Origin: Tubulanus polymorphus
Taxonomy: Eukaryota > Animalia > Nemertea
Length of the DNA stretch: 64,000 bases
Reading direction: 5' to 3'
Assembly (NCBI RefSeq): GCF_964204645.1
Contig: NC_134029.1
Span: 248,001 to 312,000, forward strand
Position 1 is the first letter of the stretch. Each line of letters opens with the position of its first letter. The notes under the pieces are model-generated. The model worked only from the letters and a program-made list of their open reading frames with translations. It was not told where the DNA came from and searched no databases. A program made the translations under genes and the position numbers. This document shows, piece by piece, positions 1,321 to 63,968 of the stretch.

Positions 1321-1321
1321 T

Positions 1322-1417
1322 CCACCAGATGGCGAGTGTGATTTCAGCACATTGAGGAAGAGTCAGTGAGACAAATAAGAGCTATTAGTCGGTTCAGCCA
1401 AATTCCAATAGATGGCG
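1322..1417 (+). promoter_or_regulatory. Two CTCF-like motifs upstream of Fat4 (CCACCAGATGGCG at 1322, CCAATAGATGGCG at 1405)
   Basis: Match by eye to the bilaterian CTCF core CCASYAGRKGGCR; binding not demonstrated. Confidence 0.4.
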
Positions 1418-2317
1418 ATCAAGTTAGAAATCTTGATAATAACTCGCAAAACTCGTAAGACCTTTGAGGAATTCCATTATATTTTGGGAACTTTGTTTTC
1501 TTGTTTACTCTGCTTCATGAAGATTCATGAATGGGACATTTTTTGAATGAAACCGCAGACATTGTGAAAAAACTTCACCTGGAGAAGTGATTATCAAGTG
1601 AAGTTCAGTTTCAATGCCATAAAGTGTATCCCGGGCTCGAAACCCAGTGAATTGACTCGGGCGCCTTAAAACTGTCAATTGACACTTGTTTATGCTGGGT
1701 AAGATTATTTCATTATGATCGAAGCAGGAATTAGAATTAGTAGTTTGGTCAACGTTTGGTGATCAAGAGTGATGACAGTTTTTAGATCGGTCAATTTGCC
1801 ATTCATGATTCGGTTGTAATGTTTTTCACCCAAGTGTCAGCAGATCATGAATAGTTTGGTAATTAACACGAGGATTAATTACTATCCTTAATTGTCATGT
1901 TAATTAACTACCGTTTAATTGTCGTGTTTGTGCAAGTGTTGCCAGTGTGTGAGCATGTTTGATGTTAATTACAGACACGAGGCGGCGCCAGTAGTAGTTA
2001 CTATGTTTTGATGTTTGATGATGGAAGTCGGTGTCGGTTCGGAAGTTTACAAATTGGATTAAAACTTGATTGTCGGCTGCGGATGAACGCGATTTAAACG
2101 TTTCAATTTGAAGATAGTAACATCACGATATATCAGAAGAGGAATAAACGATAAATCTGGATTATTGGCAAGATTAGAGCAGTTTATTGGATGAATATTT
2201 CACTCTATCGGATTAAAGAGAGTAGTCTGTATGGTTTACGTTCAGACTGAAGGTAGTTTATGAAAATGATAATGTCAGTATTAAGATAGCAGCGTTTAAA
2301 CCAGCAGTTGAAGAATC

Positions 2318-5300
2318 ATGGTAAATTCAAATATGATTCTAAAAGGGACGAAAAATTTCATGTTTCTGATAATTCTACAGTTTCTGGTGTCGACATCAGT
2401 TCAGGGTCAAGGCCCAGGCGCCGGGCAGGGGCCCGCGGGCGATGGCGGGCTCATGTCGGCTCGTACAGCGGAGGAGAGGGTAAATTTCACGATATCTGAG
2501 GAATTAAAACCCGGGACTATCGTCGGAACGATTCCCACTAAACCCGGATTTACTTATCGTTTTAATCAACAACCAGATGAATTCCGGATAGATGCGGTTA
2601 CCGGGACGATTACTACAAACATCTCGCTCGATTTAGAATCGTTGCCTAGCGATCAGATCAATTTACTCGTGCTCAGTTCAAACCCGATTTATCCGATAGA
2701 GGTTTATATTAAAGTCACCGATGTCAATGACAACGCCCCGGTTTTCCCCAGATCGGAAATATCGGCGACATTCTCCGAGCAATCGCTGATCGGGACGCGG
2801 GTCATCCTCGATACGGCGTCTGACGCGGACCGCGGCGATAACGGACGAACTACCGGTTACGCTATCACCGCCGGTAACCTCAACAATATGTTTGAAATCG
2901 GTCTGGACGCCACTCTCACCGAGCCTCTGCTCTATTTACAGAACTCTAAAAAACTCGATCGAGAAATAACGGATTCTTATCGGTTAACAGTAACCGTTAG
3001 AGATATGGGGAATCCCCCGAAATACGGCTCATTTCACGTAAATATTACCGTTTTAGATATCAACGATAATCCACCTACGTTCGATCACAGTCAGTATAGT
3101 TCTAAAATCCGTGAACTCGCGCCAGCTGGTACCTCTGTTATTAAAGTACACGCGACCGACCCGGATTCTGGACCCAATCAGGAAATCTGGTATAAAATAG
3201 CGGACGAGTCTGATACGGATCAGTTCAGTATCGATTCAAACACAGGAGTCGTTAAAACACTTCGTAAACTATCGTGTAAAACATGCGTGAATCCTAGAAA
3301 CTGTGACCCGAATACGTGCGTCGTTACGTTAGAGGCTTGGGATCGGGGAAATCCCGCTCAGAAAGGTCGAGCGTACTTACACGTAGAGATAGAGGATGAG
3401 AATGATCACGCTCCGGCGATCGAATTCCGTTACCCTCACAACCTACCGTACGCCAGCGTAGACGAGAACGTAAATATCAGCTACGTCGTCGCGTTCGTTA
3501 CCGTTAACGACCAGGACGAGGGTATCAACGCTAGATCAACGGTGTCCATTATCGGCGGTAACCGCGGTAACGCGTTCCGGTTAGATACGGACGGTTCGAG
3601 ATTCGGACAGATAAAAGTGAACGGTACTCTCGACCGGGAGAGGGTTAATACGTATAACCTGACGGTACAAGCCGTAGATCGGGGAATCCCCGCCCTTAGT
3701 TCGACCTCGTTCCTCATTATCAAGGTCAACGACGTCAACGATCACGTTCCGGTTTTCTTACAGTCTCATTATACAGCGACCCTCGGTGAACTGGTACCGA
3801 TAGGAACGTATGTAGTGAGCGTGACGGCGACCGATGACGATACCGGTATCAACGCTCAACTGTGGTACTCTATTGTATCGGGAAACGAGGCCGGATGGTT
3901 GAATATAGATCACTACACGGGACTAATCACAACCCGTAAACTACTCGATCGTGAAATACTCGCGACGTTAGCATTAAATATCTCGGCTCAAGACAGCGGT
4001 TCGATTCCATCGAGATCTTACACTAAACTCATTGTTACGATCACCGACGACAACGATCAGATACCGATGTTTAAAAATGATTCATTCCACGTGTTGTTGA
4101 CAGAGGGCGCTCCGAGGTCGACGCTCGTAATGAAACTAACGGCTCGCGACGATGACTCGGGTAGTAACGGTACAGTACGATACATCATCGATCCCGATAC
4201 ACTCAGAGATTATCCCGATACATTCACCATCGATACAAATAACGGTGAATTGAGAACTTTAATCGTATTGGATCGAGAGTTAATCCCGTTTTATATAATC
4301 CGGATTAAAGCCGAAGATAGCGGTACTCCTCCTCTATCGTCGTCGGCAACCGTTTATTTAACAGTCACCGATATAAACGATAATCTACCGATATTTTACC
4401 CGGTGAATTATTACGGGAACGCGTTAGAGAGACAGGCTGCGGGAAGTGAGGTCGTACGAGTTGCCGCCACCGATAGAGATAGCGGTAACTACGCACAGGT
4501 TAGTTACGCAATAATCAACGGAGCGGATGGGAAATTCCGGATCGATTCCCGGACTGGACTTGTAACTACTACAACAATACTGATTAAATCTGATAAATCA
4601 GTATTTACTCTAAGAGTAAGAGCTAGCGATAGTACAGGAGTAAGAGTAAATGAGATCGATGCTGTAGTTAATATAAGAGTTTACTCTGTATCCGACTCGA
4701 CGTCTGCTCCGGTATTCTCACAACTCAACGGTTACCGGTTTACTATCGTCGAGGACAGCGATTACGACAACCCAACAATCGGACGTAACGTCGGTACCGT
4801 ACGAGCTACTAGTCCACTAGGAGGCGCTAGTATTCGTTACGTAATATCAGCCGGAGACCCGTACGGAGTGTTTATTATTGACCCGGTTACCGGGGCGATC
4901 ACGACTCGCGATAAAATCGACCGAGAATCGCGAGAGTCGTACCGTCTAACAGTCGTCGCCACGGGAACCGTCAAATTCACGGAAACGGTTGTCGAGGTAA
5001 CGATAACAGATAAGAACGATAACGAACCACGATTCCCGAGTTTAAACGCTGTTGCTAGGGCCGTCGAGAACTGGCCGATCGGACAAGAGATATACGTCGC
5101 CCGGGCAACGGATATAGACGCGGGAACGAACTCTCAGATCACTTACACTCTTAAAAACGATCCCGATAATATCTTCAACATCTCACCTCAAAACGGAGCC
5201 GTTCATTTAGCTAAACCTCTACGAGAAACAGACCGTAAACAGTTCAGGTTGGTTATCACTGCTACGGACTCCGGCACTCCTCAACAATCATCGACGATGC

Positions 5301-13500: not shown

Positions 13501-16500
13501 AGGGCTATGTATTGTTGATGAGGACCTATTAGATCAGACTCCTAAATGGGGGTTTAGAGGGGGAGGGGGGCTGATCATGATCTATTTATATTTTACTAGG
13601 TTTACAATGATTCTATTCAAGGTTGTGAGGTAGAATTGATGAGTATTCTGTGAGGCTGAATAGAAGGGATTGGGGTGTAATTTTAGCTGCTAGGGATCCA
13701 GGGTTGAGGGGGAGGGGGTGGAACACCTGATATCGATCTAATATGACTCTAAATGATGTAATATTGTATAAGACACTGTTTTGATGAAGCTGAAAATGAC
13801 TGTGAAATGAGACTGAATTCAATGGTTGATTAATTCAATATAAACACAGCCTGAAGCAATCAATAATTGGGTTGAATAAAAGAGAAAATATTTCACATCC
13901 AGGTGCAACATTATTTATATCTTACATAAATTCAATGCAATAATAAGACAAAGACATAGAGGCTCATAACACAGGGACGCTGCTCTTTTATACCCAAAGA
14001 AAGACAGTTCTAAAAAAAATGATCCCTCCAGTGAGGTGTTTTATTGGAAAATACCAAATGACCAAATTTACCAAAATGGGCCCAATCAAGCCAGCACAGC
14101 TCTGCTAACCCTAGGTCATTAACCCTAGCTCCAGTCCCAACTGGGATTTGAACCGGGGTCTCTTACTTGTCAGTCCACTGTCCTAACCTCTAGACCACTG
14201 AGCTCTAGTGACTGATAGGGTTTGAAGGTTTGTGCAATGGTCAGTGGTGACCAGTCAGGTGTGGTGAGGTAACTCTATTCAATGACAATACTCCCCCTCA
14301 ACCCCCCTCCCCCTCAACCCCCCTCCCCCTTCGCCTGCTATCATCTTCTGTTTATAAAGAGATGAATTATGAAGTAGTTTAATCCAATGAATCTCCTGTT
14401 GGCTTCTCAGAAAATATTGAGAATTAACTGATGAATTTATCCCCCCCCCCAATTACTCAACTTGTACATAACATATTCATAATGAAAAAATCAGAAAAAC
14501 ACATCAAACAAAATAATAAAGCCCCAATAGAGGAGAGAGAGGAGAGAGTGTTTGAAGAGAGAGGAGAGAGTGTTTGAAGAGAGAGGAGAGAGTGTTTGAA
14601 GAGAGAGGAGAGAGTGTTTGAAGAGAGAGGAGAGAGTGTTTGAAGAGAGAGGAGAGAGTGTTTGAAGAGAGAGGAGAGAGTGTTTGAAGAGAGAGGAGAG
14701 AGTGTTTGAAGAGAGAGGAGAGAGTGTTTGAAGAGAGAGGAGAGAGTGTTTGAAGAGAGAGGAGAGAGTGTTTGAAGAGAGAGGAGAGAGTGTTTGAAGA
14801 GAGAGGAGAGAGTGTTTGAAGAGAGAGGAGAGAGTGTTTGGAGAGAGAGGAGAGAGTGTTTGAAGAGAGAGGAGAGAGTGTTTGAAGAGAGAGGAGAGAG
14901 TGTTTGAAGAGAGAGGAGAGAGTGTTTGAAGAGAGAGGAGAGAGTGTTTGAAGAGAGAGGAGAGAGTGTTTGAAGAGAGAGGAGAGAGTGTTTGAAGAGA
15001 GAGGAGAGAGTGTTTGAAGAGAGAGGAGAGAGTGTTTGAAGAGAGAGGAGAGAGTGTTTGAAGAGAGAGGAGAGAGTGTTTGAAGAGAGAGGAGAGAGTG
15101 TTTGAAGAGAGAGGAGAGAGTGTTTGAAGAGAGAGGAGAGAGTGTTTGAAGAGAGAGGAGAGAGTGTTTGGAGAGAGAGGAGAGAGTGTTTGAAGAGAGA
15201 GGAGAGAGTGTTTGAAGAGAGAGGAGAGAGTGTTTGAAGTACTGTATTGACAGACAGTGTATGTGTTCGAGGAGACACTTATACTTCAGTGATATATTTG
15301 TATGAGCAATTTATATTTAATACATTGTAAACTACAGTACTGATAATCTATATTCCATCCCCCCCCCCCCCGTACTCCCCATGAGACTCCCCCTCTCCTC
15401 CTCCCCCTCCCCCCCACTCATGAGACTACTCACTAATCTGTATTATATATTTGTAGGTAAGAATGGAGAGATAGTTTATAGTATAATATCAGGAGACATC
15501 GATGGATATTTTACGATCGGATCCAGAAATGGTACAATCTGCTCGGCTCGAGTTTTAGATAGAGAAATGACTAGTGTTTATAATCTAGTAGTGAAAGCAT
15601 TAGATCAGTCGACTGATACTAATAATAGATTCTCTAGTACGGCTCAGGTAACAAACTCTATCTCATTAATTTAAACCGACTCATTTACACAAATTTGATT
15701 CTAATATTCTGATTATTGTTTGTTGCTAGGTAACGATTCGTCTATTAGACGTTAACGATTGCGCGCCTGTGTTCACCTCGGCGACGGTTGCCCGGATACC
15801 GGAGAATACCAGTCCTAACACGGTAGCGTATACGGCGGTTGCCGTTGACGACGATGCGGGTACTAACGGTTACGTGGAGTATTCGATTGTTGCGTCTCCC
15901 GGCGACGGTTTATTTACGATTAACGCGTTCGACGGAAAGTTACGAGTTATCGGTAAATTAGACCGAGAAACGACCTTGAATTATACGATCGTATTACGAG
16001 CTCGAGATAAAGGTCAACCGACGCGGCAGACGGATATGAGTTTACACGTTTGGGTCGAGGATGAGAATGATAACTCACCTGAGTTTACTCGTAAACAGTA
16101 CTCGATACCGGTGAGCGAGGATGTAGATATCGGGTTTCAACTAATTAAAGTACGAGCCACCGATAAAGACATCGGTCTAAACGCAGCTATCAGATACTAC
16201 ATCGTCAACGGCGACGATAATCAGGATTTCATCGTCGGAGAAAAAACGGGAATTCTAACGGTGAATCGTAAATTAGATTACGAGCGTAATCGCGATTACA
16301 CTCTTTACGTACAGGCTGAGGATAGCGGGATAGTAACACGTTCCGATACCGCTACTGTAACTATCTCGGTTCTAGATGTGAACGATTTCGCTCCGATATT
16401 TCAACATTCTCCGTATATCGGATTCATTCGAGAGAATGTTTACAGTTTACCGGTTCACGTATTAACCGTTACCGCTAGAGACGATGATTCTACGGCTAAC

Positions 16501-31954: not shown

Positions 31955-32189
31955 GATTCAATATGAATAGCATCTTCACCCGTCAAGGGATTCGAACCCA
32001 CTACGCTAAAGCTGTTCGCTGGTGGAAGCGAGTTCGGCAGTGATACCTGACCCCTGGCAAGCGAGGATGTATGAATAGTTGATTCTAATTGAAGATAGAG
32101 ACCGGTAACCAGTCAACGATGATTGGTCGACTTAGCCCATTGACATATCTCGCGTAATTGAAGATAACTTGATTCACGATCCATCGCGT

Positions 32190-35100
32190 GTTCTGGATTC
32201 TGAAACCTGGGATGTCCAATCTAGTCAGCATTCAGAATAACTCAGAATCAGTATCAGTTATTCCTCGAACCTGGAACACCCCTGTAATCCCTCTATTCAG
32301 CATCGGAATCACTCTGAATCAGTATCAGTAATTACTGGGTTCAAACCCGAGACACCCCTGTACATCCTCTATTCAGCAGTAATTACTGGGTTTGAACCTG
32401 GGAACCCTTAAACTGGCTACTGGTTCAGAGTGATCCTGATGCTGAATAGATGATGTACAGGGGTGTCCAGGGTTCGAACCCAGTAATTACTGATACTGAT
32501 TCAGAGTTGTCCTGATGCTGAATAGAGGATGTACAGGGTGTCCAGGGTTTGAACCCAGTAATAACTGACACTTATTCAGAGTGGTCCTGAGGATGTACAG
32601 GGGTGACCGGACCGTACGGTGCTGCCGCTATGCTCATCGTTAGCGGGGTTTTCATACACTAACTAAAGTCAACTCTGGCAATCGACGTGCTGTCCAGTTA
32701 TACTTCGTAATCCTAGCTTGCCAGAGTTGACTAACGTTAGTGTATGAAAATCCCACTAACGATGAGCATAGAGGCAGCAACGTACGGTAAAATGTTGATA
32801 TTCTAACGAAGGTAATTACTGATTGGTCAGAGTGGTCCTGATGCTGAATAGAGGATGTACAGGGGTGTCCCAGGTTCGAACCCAGTAATTACTGATACTG
32901 ATTAAGAGTGGTCCTGATGCTGGATAGAGGATGTAAGATGGGTGTTCCGGGTTCAGACCCAGTAATTACTGATACTGATTCAGAGTGGTCCTGATACTAA
33001 ATAGAGGAAGTACCGGGGTGTTCCGGGTTCGAGAACCAGTAATTACTGATACTGATTCAGAGTGGTCCTGATACTAAATAGAGGATGTACAGGGGTGTTC
33101 CGGGTTCAGACCCAGTAATTACTGATACTGATTCAGAGTGGTCCTGATACTAAATAGAGGATGTACAGGGGTGTTCCGGGTTCAGACCCAGTAATTACTG
33201 ATACTGATTCAGAGTGGTCCTGATGCTGAATAAAGGAAGTACCGGGGTGTTCCGGGTTCGAGAACCAGTAATTACTGATAGTGATTCAGAGTGGTCCTGA
33301 TGCTGAATAAGAGGATGTACAGGGTGTTCCGGGTTCAGGGGTGTCCTGGGTTCGAGAACCAGTAATTACTGATACTGATTCAGAGTGGTCCTGATGCTGA
33401 ATAAAGGAAGTACCGGGGTGTTCCGGGTTCGAGAACCAGTAATTACTGATACTGATTCAGAGTGGTCCTGATACTAAATAGAGGATGTACAGGGGTGTTC
33501 CGGGTTCAGACCCAGTAATTACTGATACTGATTCAGAGTGGTCCTGATACTAAATAGAGGATGTACAGGGGTGTTCCGGGTTCAGACCCAGTAATTACTG
33601 ACACTGAATCAGTGTAGTCCTGATGCTGAATAGAGGATGTAGGGGTGTCTCGGGTTCGAACCCAGTAATTACTGATACTGATTCAGAGTGGTCCTGATGC
33701 TGAATAAGAGGATGTACAGGGGTGTCCAGACCGTACGGTGCTGCCGCTATGCTCATCGTTAGCGGGGTTTTCATACACTAACTTAAGTCAACTCTGGCAA
33801 TCGACGTGCTGTCCAGTTATACTCCGTAACCCTAGCTTGCCACAGTTGACTAACGTTAGTGTATGAAAATCCCGCTAACGATGAGCATAAAGGCAGCACC
33901 GTACGGTAAAATATTGATATCCTAACAAACGTAATTACTGATACTGATTCAGATAGATCCTAATACTGAATAGAGGATGTACAGGGGTGTCCCAGGTTCG
34001 GACCCAGTAATTACTGATACTGATTAAGAGTGGTCCAATAGTTACTGATACTGATTCAGAGTGTTCCTGATGCTGAATAGAGGAAGTACCGGAGTGTTCC
34101 GGGTTCGAGAACCAGTAATTACTGATATTGGTTCAGTGGTCCTGATGCTGAATAAGATGATGTACAGGGGTGTTCCGGGTTCGAGAACCAGTAATTACTG
34201 ATACTGATTCAGAGTGGTCCTGATGCTGAATAAAGGAAGTACCGGGTTGTCCCGGGTTCGAGAACGAGTAATTACTGATAACTGATTCAGAGTGGCCCTG
34301 ATGCTGAATAAAGGAAGTACCGGGGTGTCCCGGGTTCGAGAACCAGTAATTACTGTTAGTGATTCAGAGTGGTCCTGATGCTGAATAAGAGGATGTACCA
34401 GGGTGTTCCGGGTTCGAGAACCAGTAATTACTGATACTGATTCAGAGTGGTCCTGATGCTGAATAAAGGAAGTACCGGGGTGTTCCGGGTTCGAGAACCA
34501 GTAATTACTGATACTGATTCAGAGTGGTCCTGATGCTGAATAAGAGGATGTACAGGGTGTCCAGACCGTACGGTGCTGCCGCTATGCTGATCGTTAGCGG
34601 GGTTTTCAAACACTAACTAAAGTCAACTCTGGCAATTGACGTGCTGTCCAGTTATAGTTCGTAATCCTAGCTTGCCAGAGTTGACTAACGTTAGTGTATG
34701 AAAATCCCACCAACGATGAGCATAGAGGCAGCACCGTACGGTAAAATGTTAATATCTTAACAAAAGTAATTACTGATTGGTTAGAGTGGTCCTGATGCTG
34801 AATAGATGATATACAGGGGTGTCCCAGGTTCGAACCCAGTAATGACTGATACTGATTAAGAGTGGTCCTGATGCTGGATAGAGGATGTACAGGTTGTCCC
34901 GGGTTCGAGAACCAGTAATTACTGATACTGATTCAGAGTGGTCCAATAGTTACTTATACTGATCCAGAGTGTTCCTGATTCTGAATAGAGGATGTACAGG
35001 TTGTCCCGGGTTCGAGAACCAGTAATTACTGATACTGATTCAGAGTGGTCCAATAGTTACTGATACTGATTCAGAGTGGTCCTGATGCTGAATAAGATGA

Positions 35101-37656
35101 TGTACCGGGGTGTTCCGGGTTCGAGAACCAGTAATTACTGATACTGATTCAGAATGATCCTGATGCTGAATAAGGGATGTACAGGGTTGTCCCGGGTTCG
35201 AGAACCAGTAATTACTGATACTGATTCAGAGTGGTCCTGATGCTGAATAAGGGATGTACAGGGGTGTCCAGACCGTACGGTGCTGCCGCTATGCTCATCG
35301 TTAGCGGGGTTTTCATACACTAACTAAAGTCAACTCTGGCAATCGACGTGCTGTCCAGTTATACTTCGTAACCCTAGCTTGCCGGAGTTGACTAACGTTA
35401 GTGTATGAATATCCCGCTACCGATGAGCATAGAGGCAGCACCGTACGGTAAAATGTTGATATCTTAACAAAAGTAATTACTGATTGGTTAGAGTGGTCCT
35501 GATGCTGTATAGATGATATACAGGGGTGTCCCGGGTTCGAACCCAGTAATTACTGATACTGATTCAGAGTGGTCCTGATGCTGAATAGAGGATGTACAGG
35601 GGTGTCCCGGGTTCGAGAACCAGTAATTACTGATACTGATTCAGAGTGGTCCTGATGCTGAATAGAGGATGTACAGGGGTGTTTTCCGGGTTCGAGAACC
35701 AGTAATTACTAATACTGATTTAGAGTGGTCGATGCTGAATAGAGGATGTACAGGGGTGTCCCGGGTTCGACAACCAGTAATTACTGATACTGATTCAGAG
35801 CGGTCCTGATGCTGAATAGAGGAAGTACCTGGGTGTGTCCCGGGTTCGAGAACCAGTAATTAGTGATATTGGTTCAGTGGTCCTGATGCTGAATAGAGGA
35901 TGTTCAGGGGTGTCCAGACCGTACGGTGCTGCCGCTATGCTCATCGTTAGCGGGGTTTTCATACACTAACTAAAGTCAACTCTGGCAATCGACGTGCTGT
36001 CCGGTTATACTTCGTAATCCTAGCTTGCCAGAGTTGACTAACGTTAGTGTATGAAAATCCCACTACCGATGAGCATAGAGGCAGCACCGTACGGTAAAAT
36101 GTTGATATCTTAACAAAAGTAATTACTGATTGGTTAGAGTGGTCCTGATGCTGAATAGATGATATACAGGGGGTGTCCCGGGTTCGAACCCAGTAATTAC
36201 TGATACTGATTAAGAGTGGTCCTGATGCTGAATAGAGGAAGTACCGGGGTGTCCCGGGTTCGAGAACCAGTAATTACTGATACTGATTAAGAGTGGTCCT
36301 GATGCTGAATAGAGGATGTACAGGGGTGTCCAGACCGTACGGTGCTGCCGCTATGCTCATCGTTAGCGGGGTTTTCATACACTAACTAAAGTCAACTCTG
36401 GCAATCGACGTGCTGTCCAGTTATACTTCGTAACCCTAGCTTGCCGGAGTTGACTAACGTTAGTTTATGAAAATCCCACTAACGATGAGCATAGAGGCAG
36501 CACCGTACGGTAAAATATTGATATCTTAACAAAAGTAATTACTGATTGGTTAGAGTGGTCCTGATGCTGAATAGATGATATACAGGGGTGTCCCGGGTTC
36601 GATCCAAGTAATTACTGATACTGATTCAGAGTGGTCCTGATGCTGAAGAGAGGATGTACAGGGGTGTTTTCCGGGTTCGAGAACCAGTAATTACTGATAC
36701 TGATTCAGAGTGGTCCAATAGTTACTGATACTGATTCAGAGTGTTCCTGATGCTGAATAGAGGAAGTACCGGGTTGTCCCGGGTTCGAGAACCAGTAATT
36801 ACTGATACTGATTCAGAATGATCCTGATGCTGAATAGAGGATGTACAGGGGTGTCCCGGGTTCGAACCCAGTAATTACTGATACTGATTCAGAGTGGTCC
36901 TGATGCTGAATAAGATGATGTACAGGGGTGTCCCGGGTTCGACAACCAGTAATTACTGATACTGATTCAGAGTGGTCCTGAAGCTGAATAGAGGAAGTAC
37001 CGGAGTGTTCCGGGTCCGAGAACCAGTAATTACTGATATTGGTTCTGTGGTCCTGATGCTGAATAAGATGATGTACAGGGGTGTCCAGACCGTACGGTGC
37101 TGCCGCTATGCTCATCGTTAGCGGGGTTTTCATACACTAACTAAAGTCAACTCTGGCAATCGACGTGCTGTCCAGTTATACTTCGTAACCCTCGCTTGCC
37201 GGAGTTGACTAACGTTAGTTTATGAAAATCCCACTAACGATGAGCATAGAGGCAGCACCGTACGGTAAAATATTGATATCTTAAAAGTAATTACTGATTG
37301 GTTAGAGTGGCCCTGATGCTGAATAGATGATATACAGGGGTGTCCCGGGTTCGATCCCAGTAATTACTGATACTGATTCAGAGTGGTCCTGATGCTGAAT
37401 AGAGGATGTACAGGGGTGTTTTCCGGGTTCGAGAACCAGTAATTACTGATACTGATTCAGAGTGGTCCTGATGCTGAATAGAGGAAGTACCTGGGTGTCC
37501 CGGGTTCGAGAACCAGTAATTACTGATCCTAATTCAGAGTGGTCCTGATGCTGAATAGAGGAAGTACCGGGTTCGAGAACCAGTAATTACTGATACTGAT
37601 TCAGAATGATCCTGATGCTAAACAGAGGATGTGTAGGGGTGTGTCCTGGGTTCAAA
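32190..37656. repeat. Composite satellite: ~77-bp tRNA-like monomers interleaved with seven 178-bp hairpin cassettes; leftmost ~220 bp inverted
   Basis: Monomer gggttcgagaaccagtaattactgatactgattcagagtggtcctgatgctgaatagaggatgtacaggggtgtccc. Hairpins at 32611-32788, 33730-33907, 34565-34742, 35272-35449, 35918-36095, 36334-36511 and 37089-37266. Confidence 0.95.
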
Positions 37657-38585
37657 CTTTTTGTGTTACTTTTTTTTCCTTCCTTGGTGTCACAGCATTT
37701 ACATGTCTTCGAGGTTTTTGTTCTAAAATCATCTATAATATTATGTATCATAAATTATATTTAATTGAATCGACCTTATCGAGCGTACTCTGGCATGCGA
37801 GCAGTATTAAATTCAATTCCAATTTACTCTGTATTTGTCAAAGATTATGACAGATAATGTCATCATCAAATTTGGTTTCTGTGTCAATTCCTTTCAATCG
37901 TTTTCTAAAATGGAGTATTCCACATCAGGTTCCAAGAAAATGCTGTTTTTTCTGTCGCCTACACCCAGCCTAAAGAATCACCTCGAAATCAGAAACAAAG
38001 CAAAAACGACAAAAATAGAAAATGCATCAATCATTTATTTGAAACATCGATGGGTTTAAAGCACAAATAAAATTGCCAGGGGTTACAGTAGCTCAAAGGT
38101 TGGTTCAACATGTCGTATGGATAAATACCATAGTGACAATATGGAATTTTTAATTGTAACCATATCAACTAACTTTCCTTCGACCAACTTTTGAGCAACT
38201 CGTCCCACTATTTCACAATCACAAATATTCCCTTCACAATTTGTACCAGAAGCAACTGCTTAATTTGTATCTCTCGGGAAGATGAAGGAAATTCATCCAG
38301 TTTATCAGAATCTAACTAACATTCACGCTGCACTGTAGATTGAACCTGATTCACCAGATCTGAATTCAACGGATTCTTCAACCGCTTTTACATAATACAA
38401 AATAAAACTTTGAAGTACAACAAAGTGAAATGCATTTATCTAAAGTATTAAGTTTAAGCACGCGTACCTGGGGCAAGGATAGGAAAATTAGAATCATTTC
38501 AATAATCAGAGTCACTCGATCAGTGAGTCTGAGGCACGTTATAGTTCGACACAATTACGAGTCTACCATAGTTTGAAGTAAACAT

Positions 38586-40480
38586 TTAAAGTCCGATAGT
38601 GTAAGACCTTCCTTTAGGGTTATGTATAGGCATCGGCCTCGGTTCACTAATACACCATTCGTACCAGACGTTCTTATTATCGGTTAATCTCCAGAAATGA
38701 ATCTTCAACGTTTCTCCAGATTTCATGTAAACCGGTTCGCGTATCGGGAACAGTATCGGAAACCAGCTGAACATACCGGGTGAATGAGTATCCGGATTGA
38801 TACTTAACATTACGTCTTTATATAGATACGTATCGAAGTATCCGGCGATACCGTGGACGATACAGTTTTGATCGACGGTGAATGTATTCTGATTATAGCG
38901 AGTATTATCGATAGGTATCGACCGATTCGGATGAGTAAATGTAAACACGGACTGAGGTTTACCCAATAAACTACAGTTATGTAACCTAACGACGAACGGA
39001 GTTTCAAACGGAGTCTCCGCCGGTTTATCTTTCTCTTTACACAATCGAACCTCGTTAAAAAGTCGCGACGATTGAATAGGAGCGAGATACGACGTGTATT
39101 TATACGGGATACTAATCCCGTCCGGTTTGAGGAATTTCTGAGCTCCGTCGAGACATTCCGGGGATAGTTCGTTATCCCCGAACGATCCCAGTAATTCGCT
39201 TACGATTATATCCGCTTTTTCCGGGGCGTCCCATATTCTCATATCGGACGAGACAACTGTCACCTGATCACCCCATTCTTCTAGTTTTCGATTCTCCAAG
39301 GTAACGATCGCGTTTGGATTTTTCTCGACGGCGAAGATTCGTATTTTGCGATGAGCCTTAGCGGCGGCGATGATGGAGGCTTGAACGAGCGGACCTCGAC
39401 CGGCTCCGACTACCATCACTACCTGTACGTTAAACTCCTTCTCTTCATACGGTACTCGATCTAACAACGCGAAATAAACAGCTTTCTGATATTGAGAATA
39501 TTTTATCGGATCTTTCTCGAAAACTTCGTAAGTTTGAGATTCGAGATTGTCCATTAACGGTTGCAGCGGACTTTGTAAATAATCCTCGAAACCCTTAGCG
39601 AACAGCGCCACCTGGTCTAACTGAGGTTTCGTCTGCCAGATGGCCAGATGTGTTCGAGATATTGACCGTAAACTTTCATTCCTTTACCGGGAAATTGCGT
39701 CGTCCCGGAAACGATCATCTGAATATTGAGTTTAAATAACCAGCGCAACAATGACTGATGACACCTCGGTAACACGGGGTAACCCTTTTTATTAGCGAGG
39801 AATAAACGTGTCGGTATAAATACAGCTTTAACCGGTTCACCCGCCCATCTTTCTATCTCTTTCTCCGACGGTAAATCTTCCTGTAATTCCAACGCGATTC
39901 CCACTTTCTTGTTTGTGTCGCAAAATGTACGAAAACGATTCCACCATTCCCACGTGTCGGTCTCGGTGGCGCCGTCTATATCACCGTCGAATACTGGATC
40001 TAATTGAGTACTAGCCGGTTTAATCGGTATTTTAATCCAGTATTGTTGATTGGGACCCTTGATCAGATGTTCCGATAGACATCGAGCTAAACCGATACAA
40101 TCATAGCTCCTCAGATTAATCAATACAGCTGGTAATGACAGGTGCCCCGCGAATAGGAATTCCTGTTTTAAAGCTTTCTCAGAGTTTTTACGATGAATCT
40201 CGTTTTTACTGTCGAGATCGATCCAAGGTGAAATCTTACCGACGACTAACGAACTCCAGTCCTGACTAGTGATCACTAGATCAGACCTGGTTAAAGGTTC
40301 AGCTCGATTCACGGCCGGAGTCCCGCCGATTAATTCAGATTTGAATCGAGGATTCACGATCGGACAGGTTATAAACTCGTATCCTGATTTTCCGGCTTCA
40401 TCGAGAGCTTTAGTGATATCTGGTACGTCGAAGTAATCTAACCCGCTGGCGCACCGGTTAGAACTGCTCGCCTCAGTCAT
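38586..40480 (-). pseudogene. PRMT5: Protein arginine N-methyltransferase 5, intronless, frameshifted by an 8-bp duplication at 39635-39650 (broken allele, young pseudogene or assembly artefact)
   Basis: ORF 39617-40480 is the TIM barrel (TRSDLVITSQDWSSLVVGKISPWIDLDS). ORF 38586-39611 is the MTase ([31 protein letters not shown], double-E loop [28 protein letters not shown]). Removing one GCCAGATG gives a single 1887-nt (628-aa) ORF. Gene identity is secure; functional status is not. Confidence 0.85.
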
Positions 40481-41023: not shown

Positions 41024-43879
41024 TTAGAATCCGTATTTACTTTGAGCCGTTCTTTTATTCATTCTGTTCTGAGCCCATTGATTCTTCAATTCAATCTCTC
41101 TCTCCTTCGCCTACAAAACAAACAGAACAGGAAAACATTTCAAAAATTCATACTTTCCACACAGAATTAAGGATCATATTCCACCTCAGTTGGTTACATT
41201 TTAATAAGTTAATTTCCAATTGTTTTACCAAAGGGTCACATTTTAGCCAAGCACTGAATTCTAGTCTATAGAGCACCGGTTCCAGGTCTATGGGACCAAA
41301 TCTTGGTGTATGAGACTAAATCCCAGTGCAAGGGACCAAATCCAGATTTATGGGACCAAATTCTGGTGTATGGGACCGAATTCTGGTGTATGGGACTGGG
41401 TCATAGTCTATGGAACTGGGTCCTGGAGTATGGGACCGGGTCCCGGGGTACAGCACCAGGTCCTAGTCTATGGGACTGGGTCCTGGAGTATGGGACCGGG
41501 TCCCGGGGTACAGCACCAGGTCCTAGTCTATGGGACTGGGTCCTGGAGTATGGGACCGGGTCCCGGGGTACAGGACCAGGTTCTAGTCTATGGGACTGAT
41601 TCCTGTTATAAATGTACCTGGAAAGCTAGGTATGTGATTTGATGTTTTCTGCGATGCTGTCCACTCGGCATTCCTTTATTTCTCTGACTGTGAGATCTCA
41701 TATCGGTTTCTTCAGACAATGATTTCATCACCTCCACTCTACTCATCTGACTGTCTGCATGAACATCTATTATAGCTATATCTTCTTTACTGCTGAATTT
41801 CTTACCCGCAAATTTTATGAACTAAAAACAAATAGTTAATTGGAAGTTAAATCAATGAAGAATTAAAAAAAACGTCACACAAAAATTGACAACTCTCGAA
41901 AATAAAATACCTCTTCATCTTGTATGAAGCGATCTACATCTTCCAGAGAATGTTGCGGATCAGATTGTTGTTCATATCGATCATTTATTCCCTCGTTACT
42001 GTAACATCCCGTATCCACGGTAACAGCTGCAGTTGAAACGGAGGCAGCAGTTTGATTAACGTTCATGTTATTATAATCCGTATTTAAACTAGGTTTAGGG
42101 TTTGTCATGACGACAGTAGGCGGGGGTAAGTTTATCGCGCTCTGTTGCGGGTCAAATGACCGTTTGTCTAAAGAGAAGAAATCGATTGTCTCCTCGGTTT
42201 CCTCGTCGCTCTCATCAGCGACACCGGATTTTAGCGATATCAGATTGGATGATGTTTTAGCAGGATGTTTTTTCACAGGTTTCCGCACGGCTGCTGCTGC
42301 TGCTGCTGCTGGTGCTGCTGGTTTTTTCGTTAATGTGTGTGGAATTAAAGCACGTTTTGTCTCTTTGATTGTTGTGTGTTTTGGAGCAGGTAAAATAGCA
42401 GTCAATCCACAACCCTACAAAATATAACAATCATTTACAAATATACACCGCATGGACTCCTGTAGGAGCTGTAGGTCTACTCCTGTAGGAGCTGTAGGTC
42501 TACTCCTGTAGGAGCTGTAGACCAACTCCTGTAGGAGCTGTAAACCTACTCCTGTAGGAGCTGTAGGTCTACTCCTGTAGGAGCTGTAGGTCTACTCCTG
42601 TAGGAGCTGTAGGTCTACTCCTGTAGGAGCTGTAGGTCTACTCCTGTAGGAGCTGTAGGTCTACTCGATCCTGTAGGAGCTGTAGACCAACTCCTGTAGG
42701 AGCTGTAAACCTACTCCTGTAGGAGCTGTAGGTCTACTACTGTAGGAGCTGTAGGTCTACTCCTGTAGGAGCTGTAGGTCTACTCCTGTAGGAGCTGTAG
42801 GTCTACTCCTGTAGGAGCTGTAGACCTACTCCTGTAGGAGCTGTAAACCTACTCCTGTAGGAGCTGTAGGTCTACTCCTGTAGGAGCTGTAGACCTACTC
42901 CTGTAGGAGCTGTAGACCTACTCCTGTAGGAGCTGTAAACCTATTCCTGTAGGAGCTGTAGGTCTACTCCTGTAGGAGCTGTAGACCTACTCCTGTAGGA
43001 GCTGTAGACCTACTCCTGTAGGAGCTGTGCTCAGGAGCTGCTCATTTTCACCAATTTCAGCCTCAAATCTGCATAAGATTTTTTGTACCTTTGAACTCTT
43101 TTTCATTTTTTTCGAAGAAGGTTCATCATCATCAGAGTCATCAGAATCAAACTGTAAAATATCATCACAGACATAGATTGATCAGATCGCTGTAAGGATC
43201 CACCAGGTGTCAGTGCAGTCACCTCAGACAGATAAACCAGTAAACCAGTAAACTTACATTAGTCATTGTTATCGCAGCTATCTTCACCGGTTTACGCACG
43301 GCAGGTCCAGCTGGTCTGTTAGCTGGTCCGGCTGGTCTGTTAGCTGGTCCCACTGGTTTAGGTTTGGGTTTAGGTAAATTTTCCGCTGTGATTGCACCCG
43401 GAAGCTTTTTAAATTCATCTTCAACAATATCATCTTCATATCCTCCAATCAGATCAGCTGCTTTGTTACTAGTAGGATGATCAGGTAATTCTGAAATGAT
43501 AAAATAATTTATTGTCTCATAACAGGGCTGATCAAGTGAGGGGAGGGAGGACCGCGAGGGACCAGGGGGAGGGAGGACTGACCACTTTTTTGTTCACCCC
43601 AACCTCTACTATATATAGTCAGCCTTATTAGTCTAGTACCTACTCGGCTACTGTAGCCGTCGTTCCACAAACAACAGTTGTAGGGAACCGGTAACAACGA
43701 CTGCTATTCAGATAGCCCCGAGTATATGAAGTTAAATACTCACTGGTTGAAGAGCTAGCTGTGGCAGGTGAGGGTTTCAGCTTGATGACTGAAGTCGAAG
43801 ACGTAGATTCGTTTGTCTCCTCATTTTCACTCGTACTTTCCTCATCATCACTGCTCGCGTACGCCACCAGTGACGTCAT
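41024..43879 (-). CDS. PRCC: Proline-rich protein PRCC homologue, 6 exons, 408 aa
   Basis: Exons 43879-43744, 43490-43258, 43151-43089, 42414-41911, 41821-41618, 41110-41024, phase-compatible. N-terminal MTSLVAYASSDDE, KPVKIAA, GLTAILPAPK, and C-terminal HRRKHQITYLAFQAKEREIELKNQWAQNRMNKRTAQSKYGF. AATAAA at ~40979-40984 on the minus strand. Confidence 0.92.
41280..41600. repeat. 20-bp minisatellite with a 60-bp higher-order unit (tatgggactgggtcc...) in the last PRCC intron
   Basis: Visible tandem repeat; source of ORFs 41303-41599 and 41310-41642. Confidence 0.88.
42455..43041. repeat. 23-bp self-complementary minisatellite (ctactcctgtaggagctgtaggt), ~25 copies, in PRCC intron 3
   Basis: Visible tandem repeat containing CTCCT-GT-AGGAG. 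Confidence 0.95.
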
Positions 43880-55300: not shown

Positions 55301-58300
55301 GAAATTGTTGTAAGTGTAATAAACCAGGACCCAGTTCCACAGTTCTGAGTTAACATTTGACTCTGAGTTAAAAAGTTAGAAAAAAACTGATTTTAACTCA
55401 AACTCACGACCGTGGAACTGGATCCAAAGTTATTTCTTAATGAAAGTTATCTTTACTTATTAGTAAGCAATATTTTGATGCTTTTACCTAAACTTTTCTG
55501 TTACAGATTAAAGTAGATGAGACAAAAGATTCAGGTTTAACAAGTTATTGGAAAAATATCTACGTACAGAACTGGTTTTCCTCGACTGGATTCGCTATTG
55601 AAATCATGGATATTGAGAATACAATGAAATGTGGTCAGACATATCCTATAAATATCACTTATACAACTCATAGTGATTCAAAAATGAAGTTTTATTATCA
55701 GGTAATTTGATATTCAACTCGTTTATGTAACAGTGAAACTCGCTGCTGAAGTCATCCATTGACAACTCATATAAATGATGACTCAAACACTGAGTAAATT
55801 GAATTAGAAAAACAAATTGAAACTAAAATATTGAGATGACCTCAGTAGTGTGACGACTTTCAAAAAGTGAGATGACTTCAGTGATGTGATGACTTATCAG
55901 ATGACAAATTAACAGAGTCTGACCGTTATAATAGATGTTGATTTTGTCGCAAAGTTGTTGATATTTTTTCAAATGTGTGAAAATGTATTATTTTCTATTT
56001 TCAGATGTGGAATAAACTGGGTGAAATGGCTGATAATAAAGTGCTGGAGGTTCATTATCCGAAACAGGCGAATGCACCAACGACTGTACCGACTAAACCA
56101 ACATATATAAATAACTTTCAAGTTGATGTAAGTCTCCAGGACCCAGTTCCACAGTTCAGGACCCAGTTCCACAAGTTCTGAAATCAGTTCCACTATTCTG
56201 AACCCAGTTCCACAGTGTCTGAACCCAGTTCCACAATTCTGAACCCAGTTCCACAATGTCTGAACCTAGTTCCACAGTGTCTGAACCCAGTTCCACAGTT
56301 CTGAACCCAGTTCCACAATTCTGAACCCAGTTCCACAGTGTCTGAACCTAGTTTTCCAACAAATGTTTCCTCAAAGTCAAGTGTAGGATTTTATATTGTC
56401 ATTCAACAAGGACTCGGCGTGTTTCATGAATGGTTAAATCATGGACTCTATAACAAACCAGTGGATTAGTTGACATAGACTGCAGCCCCTGAACTGTAGA
56501 ACTACCTGGAAGGTCGTGAATGTAGGATGCTACTGTTACTGTTTAACTGCTATATTTCTGTATTGTTTCAGGCGAATGTAAAAGCAGTGATTTCAGGAGG
56601 AGCTCGTGTTCTAGTTTATACAATTCTGACCGATGGAACTGTAATTAGCGCCAGTCGGGAATTTCTCGTTGGTCCATGTTTTGAGAATCAGGTAAATATG
56701 AAAAAATAAGTTTCAGAAGGAGCATTTATCACGGTGGCGCCACTTACTTGGAAATTAGGGAAAAGTCAGGTATTTTTCTTTTCCTAAAAAAGGTCAGGGA
56801 ATAGTGGAGGGAATTTTGTAAAAAAGATGTTAAAAATCAGGGAAAAGTTGTGGAAATATGTTAAGATTGCATGATATTAATATCAAACACAGTTTTCATC
56901 TATGTGTTACGTATTTGACTGTGTTTATTGATTGAATTCTTAGCAGATGAAGTCAGGGAAAACAACGTGCATGTCAGAGAATAGTCAGGGAAAAGCAAGT
57001 CAAGTAAAATTGGCCACTCTGATATCTTAAATATAACAATGGTCTTTAACGCTGTGATTTGTTGAACAGGTTTCGATGAAATTCAGTAAAGAGGAAGTTT
57101 TTCCAGGAGAACAAGTTGATATTGTGTTAACAGCTAAACCCGGATCATGGTGCAGTGTAGCTGCTGTTGATAAGAGCATGTATTTGATGCAGGACAGTAA
57201 ATATTTAACACAGGAGCAGGTCTGTTGATTTTATATGTCTGCCTCGTTCCTTCCTCACCAGGGATTCGAACCTGATGGCATCGTGAGACTCTGCCACGTC
57301 CCTCCCTCGCAGGGATTGAACCTGATGGCATCGTGAAACTCTGCCACGTTCCTCCCTCGCCAGGGATTGAACCTGATAGCATCGTGAAACTCTGCCACAT
57401 TCCTCCCTCGCCAGGGATTAAACCTGATAGCATCGTGAAACTCTGCCACGTTCCTCCCTCGCCAGGGATTGAACCTGATGGCATCGTGAAACTCTGTCAC
57501 GTTCCTCCCTCGCCAGGGATTGAACCTGATGGCATCGTGAAACTCTGCCACGTTCCTCCCTCGCCAGGGATTGAACCTGATAGCATCGTGAAACTCTGCC
57601 ACGTTCCTCCCTCGCCAGGGATTGAACCTGATGGCATCGTGAAACTCTGTCACGTTCCTCCCCCGCCAGGGATTGAACCTGATGGCATCGTGAGACTCTG
57701 TCACGTTCCTCCCTCGCCAGGGATTGAACCTGATGGCATCGCGAGACTCTGTCACATTCCTTCCTCAGCAGTTCATGCAGATTGGACAGGTTAGCGGTCT
57801 GTTTGGGCAGGGTTTGTGTTTTTGTGACATAGTCTTTTTACCAATCAAGTTCAAAATGCTGCCAACCATACCCAACCAAACCGCACAGCTTGAAATGAAT
57901 GAATTTGTTCATACGCTAAAATGTCTATAAATATTGTAAGTTTGTTTGTATTTGTAGGTTGTTTCATATTTGGATCAATTCTCTCTGGATAACGATAAAC
58001 AAAATAGTATCGCGCTACCCTGTAAACATGATAATAAAGGTACCGGTATTCCAAGTATTCCAGGTATTCCTGGTATTGGTGGTGGTGGTGGTGGTGGTGG
58101 TATTGGTGGTTTCATTCCTGGTTTGTATCTGTTTTATAGAAATGGTGAATATAATGAAATGAATAGAAAGATCTGAATAATGATTATCTTGTTTTATTTT
58201 TTTAGGTAGAAATAAACGTACAGTACTAATTAACAACATTTCATACGTGTATTTAGATGCTAGCTCTGCATTCAAAGTAAGATTTGGTTTTCTATCTCTC

Positions 58301-63171: not shown

Positions 63172-63968
63172 AACTGGATCTGAGAGATTGAACTGACGAC
63201 TGTGGAGCTGGATCTGAGAGATTGAACTGACGACTGTGGAGCTGGATCTGAGAGATTGAACTGACGACTGTGGAGCTGGATCTGAGAGATTGAACTGACG
63301 ACTGTGGAGCTGGATCTGAGAGATTGAACTGACGACTGTGGAGCTGGATCTGAGAGATTGAACTGACGACTGTGGAGCTGGATCTGAGAGATTGAACTGA
63401 CGACTGTGGAGCTGGATCTGAGAGATTGAACTGACGACTGTGGAGCTGGATCTGAGAGATTGAACTGACGACTGTGGAGCTGGATCTGAGAGATTGAACT
63501 GACGACTGTGGAGCTGGATGTGGAAGATTGAACTGACGACTGTGGAGCTGGATCTGAGAGATTGAACTGACGACTGTGGAGCTGGATCTGAGAGATTGAA
63601 CTGACGACTGTGGAGCTGGATCTGAGAGATTGAACTGACGACTGTGGAGCTGGATCTGAGAGATTGAACTGACGACTGTGGAGCTGGATGTGGAAGATTG
63701 AACTGACGACTGTGGAGCTGGATCTGAGAGATTGAACTGACGACTGTGGAGCTGGATCTGAGAGATTGAACTGACGACTGTGGAGCTGGATGTGGAAGAT
63801 TGAACTGACGACTGTGGAGCTGGATCTGAGAGATTGAACTGACGACTGTGGAGCTGGATCTGAGAGATTGAACTGACGACTGTGGAGCTGGATCTGAGAG
63901 ATTGAACTGACGACTGTGGAGCTGGATCTGAGAGATTGAACTGACGACTGTGGAGCTGGATGTGGAAG
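63172..63968. repeat. 34-bp minisatellite (gaactgacgactgtggagctggatctgagagatt), ~23 copies
   Basis: Near-perfect tandem array; the unit contains actgtggagctggatc, resembling the right TIR of the MITE family. Confidence 0.96.

Follow-up and report, generated by a model that had tools for sequence, protein, structure and literature searches.

Hairpin cassettes in a 77-bp satellite of the nemertean Tubulanus polymorphus are probably passively amplified copies of a MITE-like palindrome captured once

Seven 178-bp hairpin cassettes are embedded in a 77-bp satellite array of the nemertean Tubulanus polymorphus (contig NC_134029.1, positions 248,001–312,000; this whole 64,000-nucleotide stretch is referred to below as the window). 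They probably derive from a MITE-like palindrome that was captured once in a transposon-borne 77-bp satellite and was then co-amplified passively. Although the initial annotation had put them forward as the best candidate for an undescribed system, the cassettes exemplify a mode of repeat growth that is already known, and their interpretation as an RNA gene cluster is unsupported. Satellites that expand from short arrays in transposons, and composites of a MITE with a tandem array, have been reviewed (PMC12628747).

The window array has unique flanks and lies between a cadherin-like gene and a PRMT5 gene that converge on it. Its features are as follows.

32190–32405, minus strand: about three degenerate reverse 77-bp monomers, which make up the array's inverted, foldback-type left end (map '<<<..39..>>>[C+]'; inverted repeats I1, I10 and I11)
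32406–37656, plus strand: satellite array of about 60 forward monomers with the seven cassettes between them (TRF periods 76–78, spacing list and map)
32611–32788, plus strand: cassette 1, 178-bp hairpin with one substitution in the right terminal palindrome
33730–33907, plus strand: cassette 2, 178-bp hairpin, placed in the copy tree away from the remaining copies, in an unresolved region beside the array at C5:0.38 Mb
34565–34742, plus strand: cassette 3, 178-bp hairpin, the most decayed of the seven, with 62 Watson-Crick pairs
35272–35449, plus strand: cassette 4, 178-bp hairpin and query sequence of the searches
35450–35471, plus strand: linker behind cassette 4, listed as an example; 22 nt with a 6-bp stem-loop (alignment and fold)
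35918–36095, plus strand: cassette 5, 178-bp hairpin
36334–36511, plus strand: cassette 6, 178-bp hairpin, in a local 416-bp duplication with cassette 5 (TRF period 416, 94%)
37089–37266, plus strand: cassette 7, 178-bp hairpin, sister of cassette 6 in the tree

When the window was searched for ACCGTACGGT with at most one mismatch, 15 matches were found against 1.1 expected, and 14 of them were the ends of the seven cassettes, the sole substitution in the terminal palindrome being at the right end of cassette 1. The search thus recovered the palindrome-bounded 178-bp units of the initial annotation, and all six of its start-to-start distances (1119, 835, 707, 646, 416, and 755 bp) were reproduced. 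Each of the seven cassettes is exactly 178 bp long and consists of 71-nt arms and a 36-nt loop. The arms form 62–65 Watson-Crick pairs of 71 (87–92% complementarity); the long imperfect hairpin described earlier stands, with a span in place of the single value of about 65. Non-Watson-Crick positions 17, 38, and 54/56 are common to all seven cassettes and position 55 to six, in agreement with the recurring mismatches reported before, and each cassette carries one to four further private mismatches. When each copy was folded, all seven gave very stable predicted hairpins (−114 to −122 kcal/mol, z −15 to −22).

Each cassette substitutes for the palindromic GGTTCGAACC part (GGTTCGA(GA)ACC) of the 77-bp monomer. 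Directly behind it comes a 22-nt linker that contains a 6-bp stem; all seven cassettes have this linker, and behind cassette 7 it is 3 nt shorter. The replacement of a monomer part and the stem-loop linker had been correctly noted, but the linker had been given as about 24 nt, and the inserted unit extends beyond the 178-bp cassette into the linker, as judged from related sequences: a minimum of 6 nt at the start of the linker prolong the palindrome of free relatives (free copy L048; also copy L070), and in L070 the whole linker is part of the palindrome. In a genome-wide sample, 66 of 76 cassettes were exactly 178 bp long, whereas only 13 of 44 monomer spacings in the window array were exactly 77 bp (monomer length 67–107 bp, mode 77), consistent with the earlier contrast between constant cassette length and monomer indels. 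No regular multi-monomer period was found; the cassette spacing is irregular, with a single local duplication of 416 bp. A tRNA origin of the monomer, or its identity as a Pol III repeat, is not supported: ARAGORN found no tRNA in the window or the carrier loci described below, and Rfam gave no relevant family and no tRNA, either for the window at the gathering threshold or at E-values up to 10 for positions 34900–35700 (ten monomers), leaving only box-like motifs.

We searched the genome of this invertebrate (268 Mb) for further copies. A 46-mer from the loop had 250 matches, corresponding to at least 250 cassettes of the window's subfamily; a 30-mer from the left arm had 893 matches on both strands, corresponding to about 446 hairpins in the wider family; and the right end together with the linker had 393 matches. 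The cassettes occupy about 30 or more loci and are mostly subtelomeric: among the matches listed, 85 of 100 copies, and 24 of 30 loci, lay no more than 2 Mb from a chromosome end, where 14.5% would be expected. Of 67 copies sampled from 36 loci on many chromosomes, 56 had the same left junction, 64 the same right junction, and 54 both. Because both junctions agree in so many copies, a single capture event can be taken to have founded all cassettes. A phylogenetic tree of the copies placed six of the seven window cassettes together, but the support was weak (94/79), cassette 2 fell apart from them, and no well-supported set held the six; the rows nearest to the window cluster came from C5:0.32 Mb and C4:1.84 Mb.

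The wider family also includes free relatives of 137–176 bp that carry no monomers. Fifteen of 25 sampled relatives had monomer-free flanks that were mutually unrelated, as inspected over 1.5 kb on each side for five loci and about 150 bp for the other ten. The arm core is common to these relatives, whereas their centres differ. Like MITEs, the hairpins are short, non-coding, and bounded by terminal inverted repeats (137–210-bp palindromes with no ORF, in which the arms constitute the whole element), and they are present in many dispersed copies in unrelated flanks. The genome-wide check for free copies with target-site duplications yielded the free copies, but the palindrome boundaries revealed no consistent direct repeats; a geometry of 0–9 nt on one side and 28–38 nt on the other recurred weakly, at 3–5 of 19 loci, near chance. 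No sharp common terminus was found for the free hairpins, nor, among the first 100 of 893 arm matches, an autonomous partner; one pair of arms 3.8 kb apart (L081) encloses no ORF of more than 102 aa, and ORFs beside free hairpins (L051–L054) matched no Pfam family. Because none of these features was found, "MITE" here denotes resemblance rather than proven membership.

A mini-array with a single cassette is internal to two larger repeats, namely, a dispersed non-coding element, hereafter the carrier, and a subtelomeric macro-repeat of 10.7–12 kb (spacing about 10.7 kb on C4 and about 12 kb on C10). In the 10-kb stretch of macro-repeat examined (L043, on C4), there was no ORF of 120 aa or more. 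A 925-bp head lies directly upstream of the mini-arrays and, from 451 candidates, at least 40 copies were scored (26 full length, the rest partial), with 82–97% identity (92–97% for the full-length copies), on all large chromosomes. Besides the head, the carrier copies have in common the sequence that precedes it, the array itself, and a tail of about 670 bp. Heads also immediately precede long arrays at C4:24.04, C4:24.58, C4:1.44, and C1:0.57 Mb. A TC start at the 5' end was seen in two copies of one subfamily, and the tail with hairpins near the 3' end in the other subfamily, the two ends being recovered from different copies. The tail ends in ATAATGG(GSTT) and not in CTRR, and comparison of the first 60 nt at the 5' end with the tail gave no inverted match that would represent sub-terminal inverted repeats. 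On the right-hand side of a second carrier variant (L031/L034), a common 550 bp is parted from the array by unshared DNA.

From the common junctions, the free relatives, and the dispersed carrier, we propose the following course, which upholds in substance the earlier suggestion of a MITE captured once and amplified, possibly within a Helentron-like composite. The cassette would be a left-truncated copy of a small (about 140–220 bp), palindromic, MITE-like interspersed repeat that was captured once in a 77-bp monomer, at the monomer's own palindrome GGTTCGAACC. The resulting chimeric monomer (5' monomer part, hairpin, 22-nt linker, and variant monomer) would then have been copied passively alongside ordinary monomers, capture thus preceding amplification. 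The satellite itself forms the tandem array inside a dispersed non-coding element, which may be Helitron-like, and inside the 10.7–12-kb subtelomeric macro-repeat. Transposition of the carrier may have seeded arrays, and unequal exchange and local duplication may have enlarged mini-arrays to long arrays, where the number of monomers between successive cassettes varies. The constant length and recurring mismatches of the cassettes would be the legacy of the single founder, rather than features upheld by selection. No match to the carrier head, tail, or upstream part was found anywhere in the window; because of this and the unique flanks, the seeding route of the window array is inferred, and the array is probably an orphan that lost the carrier ends or never had them. 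The capture account is harder to reconcile, as a single accident, with a second hairpin subfamily that lies inside the same satellite at another monomer position, suggestive of some mutual affinity of hairpin and satellite.

Drosophila hpRNA loci and other long inverted repeats are sources of endo-siRNAs. The window array resembles hpRNA loci in its long, imperfect, very stable hairpins in tandem copies, and it could be a source of hairpin RNA, endo-siRNA, or piRNA, with read-through from the convergent genes and dicing of the 71-bp stems. The diversity of the arms (0.047–0.051) is about twofold lower than that of the loop (0.105) and linker (0.108), which is not predicted by pure neutral decay. 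In a less biased sample, the difference amounted to a ratio of 1.86, with a weak site-permutation p of about 0.02, and a few subfamily-marker sites account for most of the difference. The initial annotation had taken many free copies, together with a lack of small RNAs and arms as diverse as loop and monomers, as the mark of a passively amplified MITE; the many free copies were found, whereas the arms show only about half the diversity of loop and linker. Between subfamilies, the arms co-vary (16 pairs; 45 cells with a change in both partners, versus 24 ± 3.7 after shuffling), and something appears, from this pattern, to keep founder hairpins palindromic. Within the cassette subfamily, however, the pairing of the stem is not maintained in evolution as it would be in an hpRNA or endo-siRNA locus: 163 changes turned a Watson-Crick pair into a mismatch and 43 into G·U, and one was compensatory, with no excess of G·U (21% of arm changes against roughly 25% expected by chance). 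Moreover, unlike hpRNA loci, the cassettes exist in hundreds of transposon-like copies, mostly subtelomeric and inside transposon-like carriers, and no Rfam family matched. Transposon history explains both the hairpin structure and the copy number. The small-RNA part of the initial annotation has no support, and we regard a hairpin-RNA source as very unlikely.

It is also conceivable that the hairpin was born in place as a foldback junction, that is, as the centre of an inverted duplication of the satellite, the free copies being remnants. In the carrier, the monomers to either side of the cassette have opposite orientations, an inverted block opens the window array, and two copies (L064 and L070) are 209–210-bp palindromes with outer arms of monomer-like or linker sequence. 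Yet no similarity to the monomer was detectable in the hairpin core, in the long arrays forward monomers flank the cassette on both sides, and 15 of the 25 sampled relatives have unrelated flanks that are monomer-free over the lengths inspected, making this origin unlikely. The hairpin may alternatively be an active driver, as a cruciform, a replication-stalling palindrome, or a rolling-circle terminator or origin; by promoting breakage, unequal exchange, or re-initiation, it would cause the arrays containing it to expand or spread preferentially. The numerous cassette-bearing arrays with irregular spacing (342, 490, and 416–1119 bp), the palindromic state of the founders, the TC starts of two carrier copies and the hairpins near the 3' end of the tail, and one cassette (L081) whose arms are parted by 3.8 kb of foreign DNA are all consistent with this. 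On the other hand, two carrier copies without a cassette have kept the mini-array, and the carrier has a 3' end other than CTRR; an active driver seems quite improbable.

The proposed passive co-amplification of a captured palindrome has close parallels. The MITE-derived tandem repeats Xstir and Xmix of Xenopus, and the Tc1/mariner MITE with a satellite, miDNA4 (PMC12628747), likewise exist side by side as free inverted-repeat elements, as tandem arrays, and as composites of both, with variable monomer numbers per copy and short internal arrays that give rise to long ones. In contrast to these, the palindrome here is a passenger in the monomer rather than a frame around the repeats, neither a target-site duplication nor a transposase family could be assigned, and the monomer has no similarity to the hairpin, whereas the Xstir repeats come from internal MITE sequence (PMC12628747). 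Satellite arrays are also found in non-autonomous Helitrons and Helentrons of Crassostrea gigas and other bivalves and in Drosophila DINE-TR1 (PMC12628747, PMC8268682). As in those elements, the carrier is dispersed and non-coding, its conserved ends enclose a central array whose length varies, the repeat occurs both inside and outside the element, no target-site duplication is obvious, and TC stands at the 5' end and hairpins near the 3' end, albeit in different carrier subfamilies. The carrier differs from Helitrons in its 3' end and from Helentrons in that no sub-terminal inverted repeats were found, and the window array differs from both in having neither carrier end. In the Tetris and Foldback-type elements of Drosophila (PMC4079207, cited in PMC12628747), as far as the cited account describes them, inverted tandem repeats around a centre supply satellite building blocks, comparable with the inverted monomers at the left end of the window array and in the carrier mini-array; relative to that account, long symmetrical terminal arrays are absent here, a coding partner is not known, and the monomers of long arrays mostly have one orientation.

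The hairpin might still be kept palindromic for a reason, either as a structural DNA signal (a terminator or origin hairpin, or a cruciform) with which the satellite-bearing, possibly rolling-circle element would amplify its internal array, or as a genome-wide small-RNA source concentrated at subtelomeres. We consider this improbable; if true, it would mean a subtelomeric satellite whose expansion or silencing hinges on an embedded hairpin module. The cassette array opens no new kind of system. It provides a clean, datable case from the poorly studied phylum Nemertea, which shows how a small palindromic repeat, a mini-array borne by a transposon, and long satellite arrays near chromosome ends are connected stages within a single repeat family. 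Given its single origin and fixed junctions, the cassette is a convenient marker with which one may follow, copy by copy, how arrays expand, chromosome ends exchange sequence, and carriers transpose.

Fourteen of the 15 occurrences of the palindrome ACCGTACGGT in the window (≤1 mismatch; 1.1 expected) are the borders of seven hairpin cassettes embedded in an array of a 77-bp satellite. The main features are as follows.

Features of the window
upstream of the array, + strand: FAT-like cadherin with long exons
~32190–37656: satellite array, the first ~3 monomers reverse-oriented
32611, 33730, 34565, 35272, 35918, 36334, 37089: starts of the seven cassettes
downstream of the array, − strand: PRMT5 gene
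38586–39611, − strand: PRMT5 catalytic and oligomerisation parts
39617–40480, − strand: PRMT5 TIM-barrel part

The initial annotation described the cassettes correctly: all seven are palindrome-bounded and exactly 178 bp long, with two 71-nt arms (87–92% complementary) around a 36-nt loop. Each was predicted to fold into a single long, stable hairpin (−114 to −122 kcal/mol, z −15 to −22). The non-Watson-Crick positions 17, 38, and 54/56 are common to all seven copies and position 55 to six of them, and each copy carries 1–4 extra private mismatches. The cassette occupies the place of the GGTTCGA(GA)ACC segment in the monomer and is followed by a 22-nt linker able to form a 6-bp stem. Monomer length varies within the array, where the spacing is exactly 77 bp in only 13 of 44 cases; these length variants are older satellite subtypes. 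Because the first ~3 monomers are reversed, the left end of the array is an inverted junction. The array also contains a 416-bp local duplication (94% identity). The monomer consensus (e.g., window 35472–35548) contains two perfect palindromes, GGGTTCGAACCC and AGTAATTACT.

Pattern searches of the 268-Mb assembly (77 contigs), in which the window is C5:248001–312000, gave copy counts that are lower bounds: 393 matches to the final 25 nt of the cassette with the adjoining 5 nt of linker (3 mismatches allowed), 893 matches over both strands to the left arm's first 30 nt (approximately 446 hairpins), 250 matches to a subfamily-specific 46-nt loop pattern, and 1326 matches to a 43-nt monomer pattern. 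Among the first 100 cassettes listed, all on six chromosomes whose length is known, 85 lay <2 Mb from a chromosome end, as did 24 of 30 loci (14.5% expected). Many loci are arrays resembling that of the window, with cassettes spaced 342, 490, or more bp apart, and others are solitary mini-arrays in which a single cassette follows 2–9 monomers and precedes a few more. When 67 distinct cassette copies from 36 loci were compared, in a sample skewed towards well-conserved cassettes, 56 had the same left junction (monomer ...GTCCNG, then cassette), 64 the same right junction (linker followed by monomer start), and 54 the same pair of junctions; GTCCCG was the commonest left junction, and the window copies carried the local variant GTCCAG. 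The exact length of 178 bp was found in 66 of 76 sampled cassettes. These junctions suggest that a single founding event lies behind the captured cassette, and the fixed length and recurring mismatches are as predicted by descent from one founder. In a maximum-likelihood tree, six of the seven window copies were placed together, weakly supported (94/79) and absent from any well-supported set, with copies at C5:0.32 Mb and C4:1.84 Mb as their nearest outside neighbors; the seventh lay in an unresolved region, beside the array at C5:0.38 Mb. The other arrays formed clades of their own, which, together with the grouping of the window copies, indicates that amplification was mainly local.

Free relatives of the cassette also exist. 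At C5:24857895, a 156-bp hairpin shares the outer 50 nt of each arm with the cassette and differs in its center, and there is no monomer within 1.5 kb; its palindrome extends 6 nt further on both sides, the right 6 nt being the first bases of the linker. A search with this hairpin yielded 584 first-look candidates (the best 40 candidates were scored in each DNA search). Among 25 relatives examined, 15 had monomer-free, mutually unrelated flanks (inspected over 1.5 kb on each side at five loci and ~150 bp at the other ten), and 10 were embedded in 77-bp monomers. No fixed target-site duplication and no common sharp terminus were found at the boundaries examined, and the hairpin core showed no similarity to the monomer. 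One embedded subfamily occupies another monomer site, beside the second palindrome AGTAATTACT, and has a 36-nt spacer there; hairpin and satellite therefore came together at least twice, or did so long ago. The two subfamilies are each embedded at one or other monomer palindrome, and a target preference is conceivable. At another locus (L070), a linker flanks the hairpin on each side, the two being inverted relative to each other and the whole forming a palindrome of 209 bp; cassette plus linker therefore looks like a left-truncated copy. Two further configurations were seen. In L081 (G000:C6:109900–116300, positions 1022–4974), the two 70-nt arms of a cassette are separated by 3.8 kb rather than by 36 nt, with ~40 nt of inner arm plus loop duplicated on both sides; the intervening DNA holds 12-bp and 28-bp minisatellites throughout and no ORF >102 aa. 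The loop may have received an insertion here, or the arms may be the ends of a larger element. On C11 (L052–L060; G000:C11:8.91–8.94 Mb), each of at least seven ~3.5-kb tandem units contains a hairpin of the free type together with an open frame (≥305 aa) that matches no Pfam family.

Most of the solitary mini-arrays first found lie inside a non-coding repeat near chromosome ends.

Subtelomeric macro-repeats
C4, 27.17–27.30 Mb: macro-repeat of ~10.7 kb
C10, 13.93–14.17 Mb: macro-repeat of ~12 kb

No ORF ≥120 aa was found in a 10-kb stretch of the C4 macro-repeat (L043). In three macro-repeat loci (L015, L020, L022), short TTAGGG-type tracts occur ~1.1 kb upstream of the cassette, after a tRNA-like stretch with box A/box B motifs in which ARAGORN called no tRNA. 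A second carrier is dispersed through chromosome interiors and has a 925-bp head directly upstream of the mini-array, with at least 40 scored copies (26 full-length, the rest partial) from 451 candidates and 82–97% identity (92–97% among full-length copies). Besides the head, its copies have in common a segment upstream of it (two variants), the mini-array, and a ~670-bp tail that carries two small hairpins close to the 3′ end. Inside the element, the cassette has forward monomers on one side and a short reverse-oriented block on the other, and there is no ORF ≥90 aa. Two copies of one variant start with TC, at a point 281 bp upstream of the head. The cassette is missing from the mini-array of two carrier copies. 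Some traits of the dispersed carrier, whose two ends were read in different copies, are Helitron-like (the TC start, the 3′ hairpins, the internal tandem repeats, and the lack of an evident duplication); others, namely a CTRR end and sub-terminal inverted repeats, are missing, so that the carrier is at most possibly a Helitron relative. Heads stand immediately upstream of long arrays at C4:24.04, C4:24.58, C4:1.44, and C1:0.57 Mb, indicating that these four are expanded internal arrays of carrier copies.

In the window array, the head, the tail, and the head-upstream part are all absent, and the 600 bp on each side are genome-unique except for two small interspersed repeats. One of these, just left of the array (window 31971–32069, ~100 bp; 1261 first-look candidates, 88–99% identity in the 40 scored), is a very abundant SINE- or MITE-like small interspersed element and also adjoins a free hairpin (L064). 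The other, to the right (window ~38070–38210, ~130 bp), has 461 candidates at 73–77% identity. As the cadherin is on the + strand and PRMT5 on the − strand, the array lies between convergent genes. PRMT5 (38586–40480) appears as two long ORFs split by only one stop and a frame change; the break is a very short intron or else a frameshift in a gene with almost no introns (retrocopy-like?). Unrelated minisatellites crowd the window (85 TRF rows in 64 kb; 14534–15239, 42456–43028, 57238–57766, 63174–63961, and many other sites), for example 22 bp × 32 (99% identity), 23 bp × 25, 51 bp × 10, and 34 bp × 23 (97%).

The initial annotation offered two readings of the cassettes, a hairpin-RNA cluster or a MITE captured once and amplified as a variable higher-order repeat, and suggested that the divergence of arms, loop, and monomers would bear on them. 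The arms were not equal to the loop. Nucleotide diversity was 0.047–0.051 (arms), 0.105 (loop), 0.108 (linker), and 0.17–0.21 (flanking monomers). The last value is inflated, as the monomers are not orthologous, and those of arms and loop are lowered, as the copies had been picked up through their similarity to the cassette. Among 31 copies that were not themselves search matches, the loop-to-arm ratio was 1.86 (site-permutation p 0.02), a difference carried mostly by a handful of subfamily-marker sites. The lower arm diversity is a weak signal that cannot be dismissed and is no evidence of RNA function. Pairing was not kept: in 58 cassette-subfamily copies of 178 bp, paired positions showed 163 changes from Watson-Crick to mismatch and 43 to G·U, with three pair-breaking double changes and one pair-keeping. 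The G·U share of 21% is close to the roughly 25% that we estimate from transition bias alone; as disruptive changes dominate, pairing decays within the subfamily. Neither the cassette nor the monomer matched an Rfam family, and no tRNA was predicted in the window. We found nothing specific in these sequences in favor of the putative hairpin-RNA role.

Across a wider family of 24 members, both-side pair-keeping changes occurred in 16 of 67 pairs and 45 cells, against 12.0 ± 1.8 pairs and 24 ± 3.7 cells in shuffles, and the covariation score was 0.131 against 0.02–0.04 with slid partners; the arm identity of individual copies was 77–90%. Covariation between subfamilies combined with decay of copies indicates that the founders of new subfamilies were palindromic and that individual copies decay. 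Such founder palindromy would be expected if a single protein had to recognize both ends of the element, and also if the arms were homogenized or regenerated from one arm.

On the best-supported reading, the cassette would be a palindromic passenger of a satellite carried by transposable elements. A single capture would have placed a small MITE-like hairpin in a satellite monomer, and the chimeric monomer would then have spread with its mini-array inside the dispersed non-coding element and the subtelomeric macro-repeat. Some mini-arrays may have grown into long arrays with irregular cassette spacing via unequal exchange and local duplication, of which the 416-bp duplication in the window is an example. 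The idea of a captured MITE or composite mobile unit was essentially right, except that the mobile unit extends far beyond the cassette and the monomers next to it and that the window array is an orphan without carrier ends. Published models have satellites growing out of short arrays carried by transposons, especially Helitron/Helentron elements, and include Xenopus families (Xstir, miDNA4) that occur at once as free MITEs, as tandem arrays, and as composites (PMC12628747). The history proposed here for the hairpin and satellite matches these models, the nemertean repeat, like Xstir and miDNA4, presenting free, tandem, and composite forms side by side.
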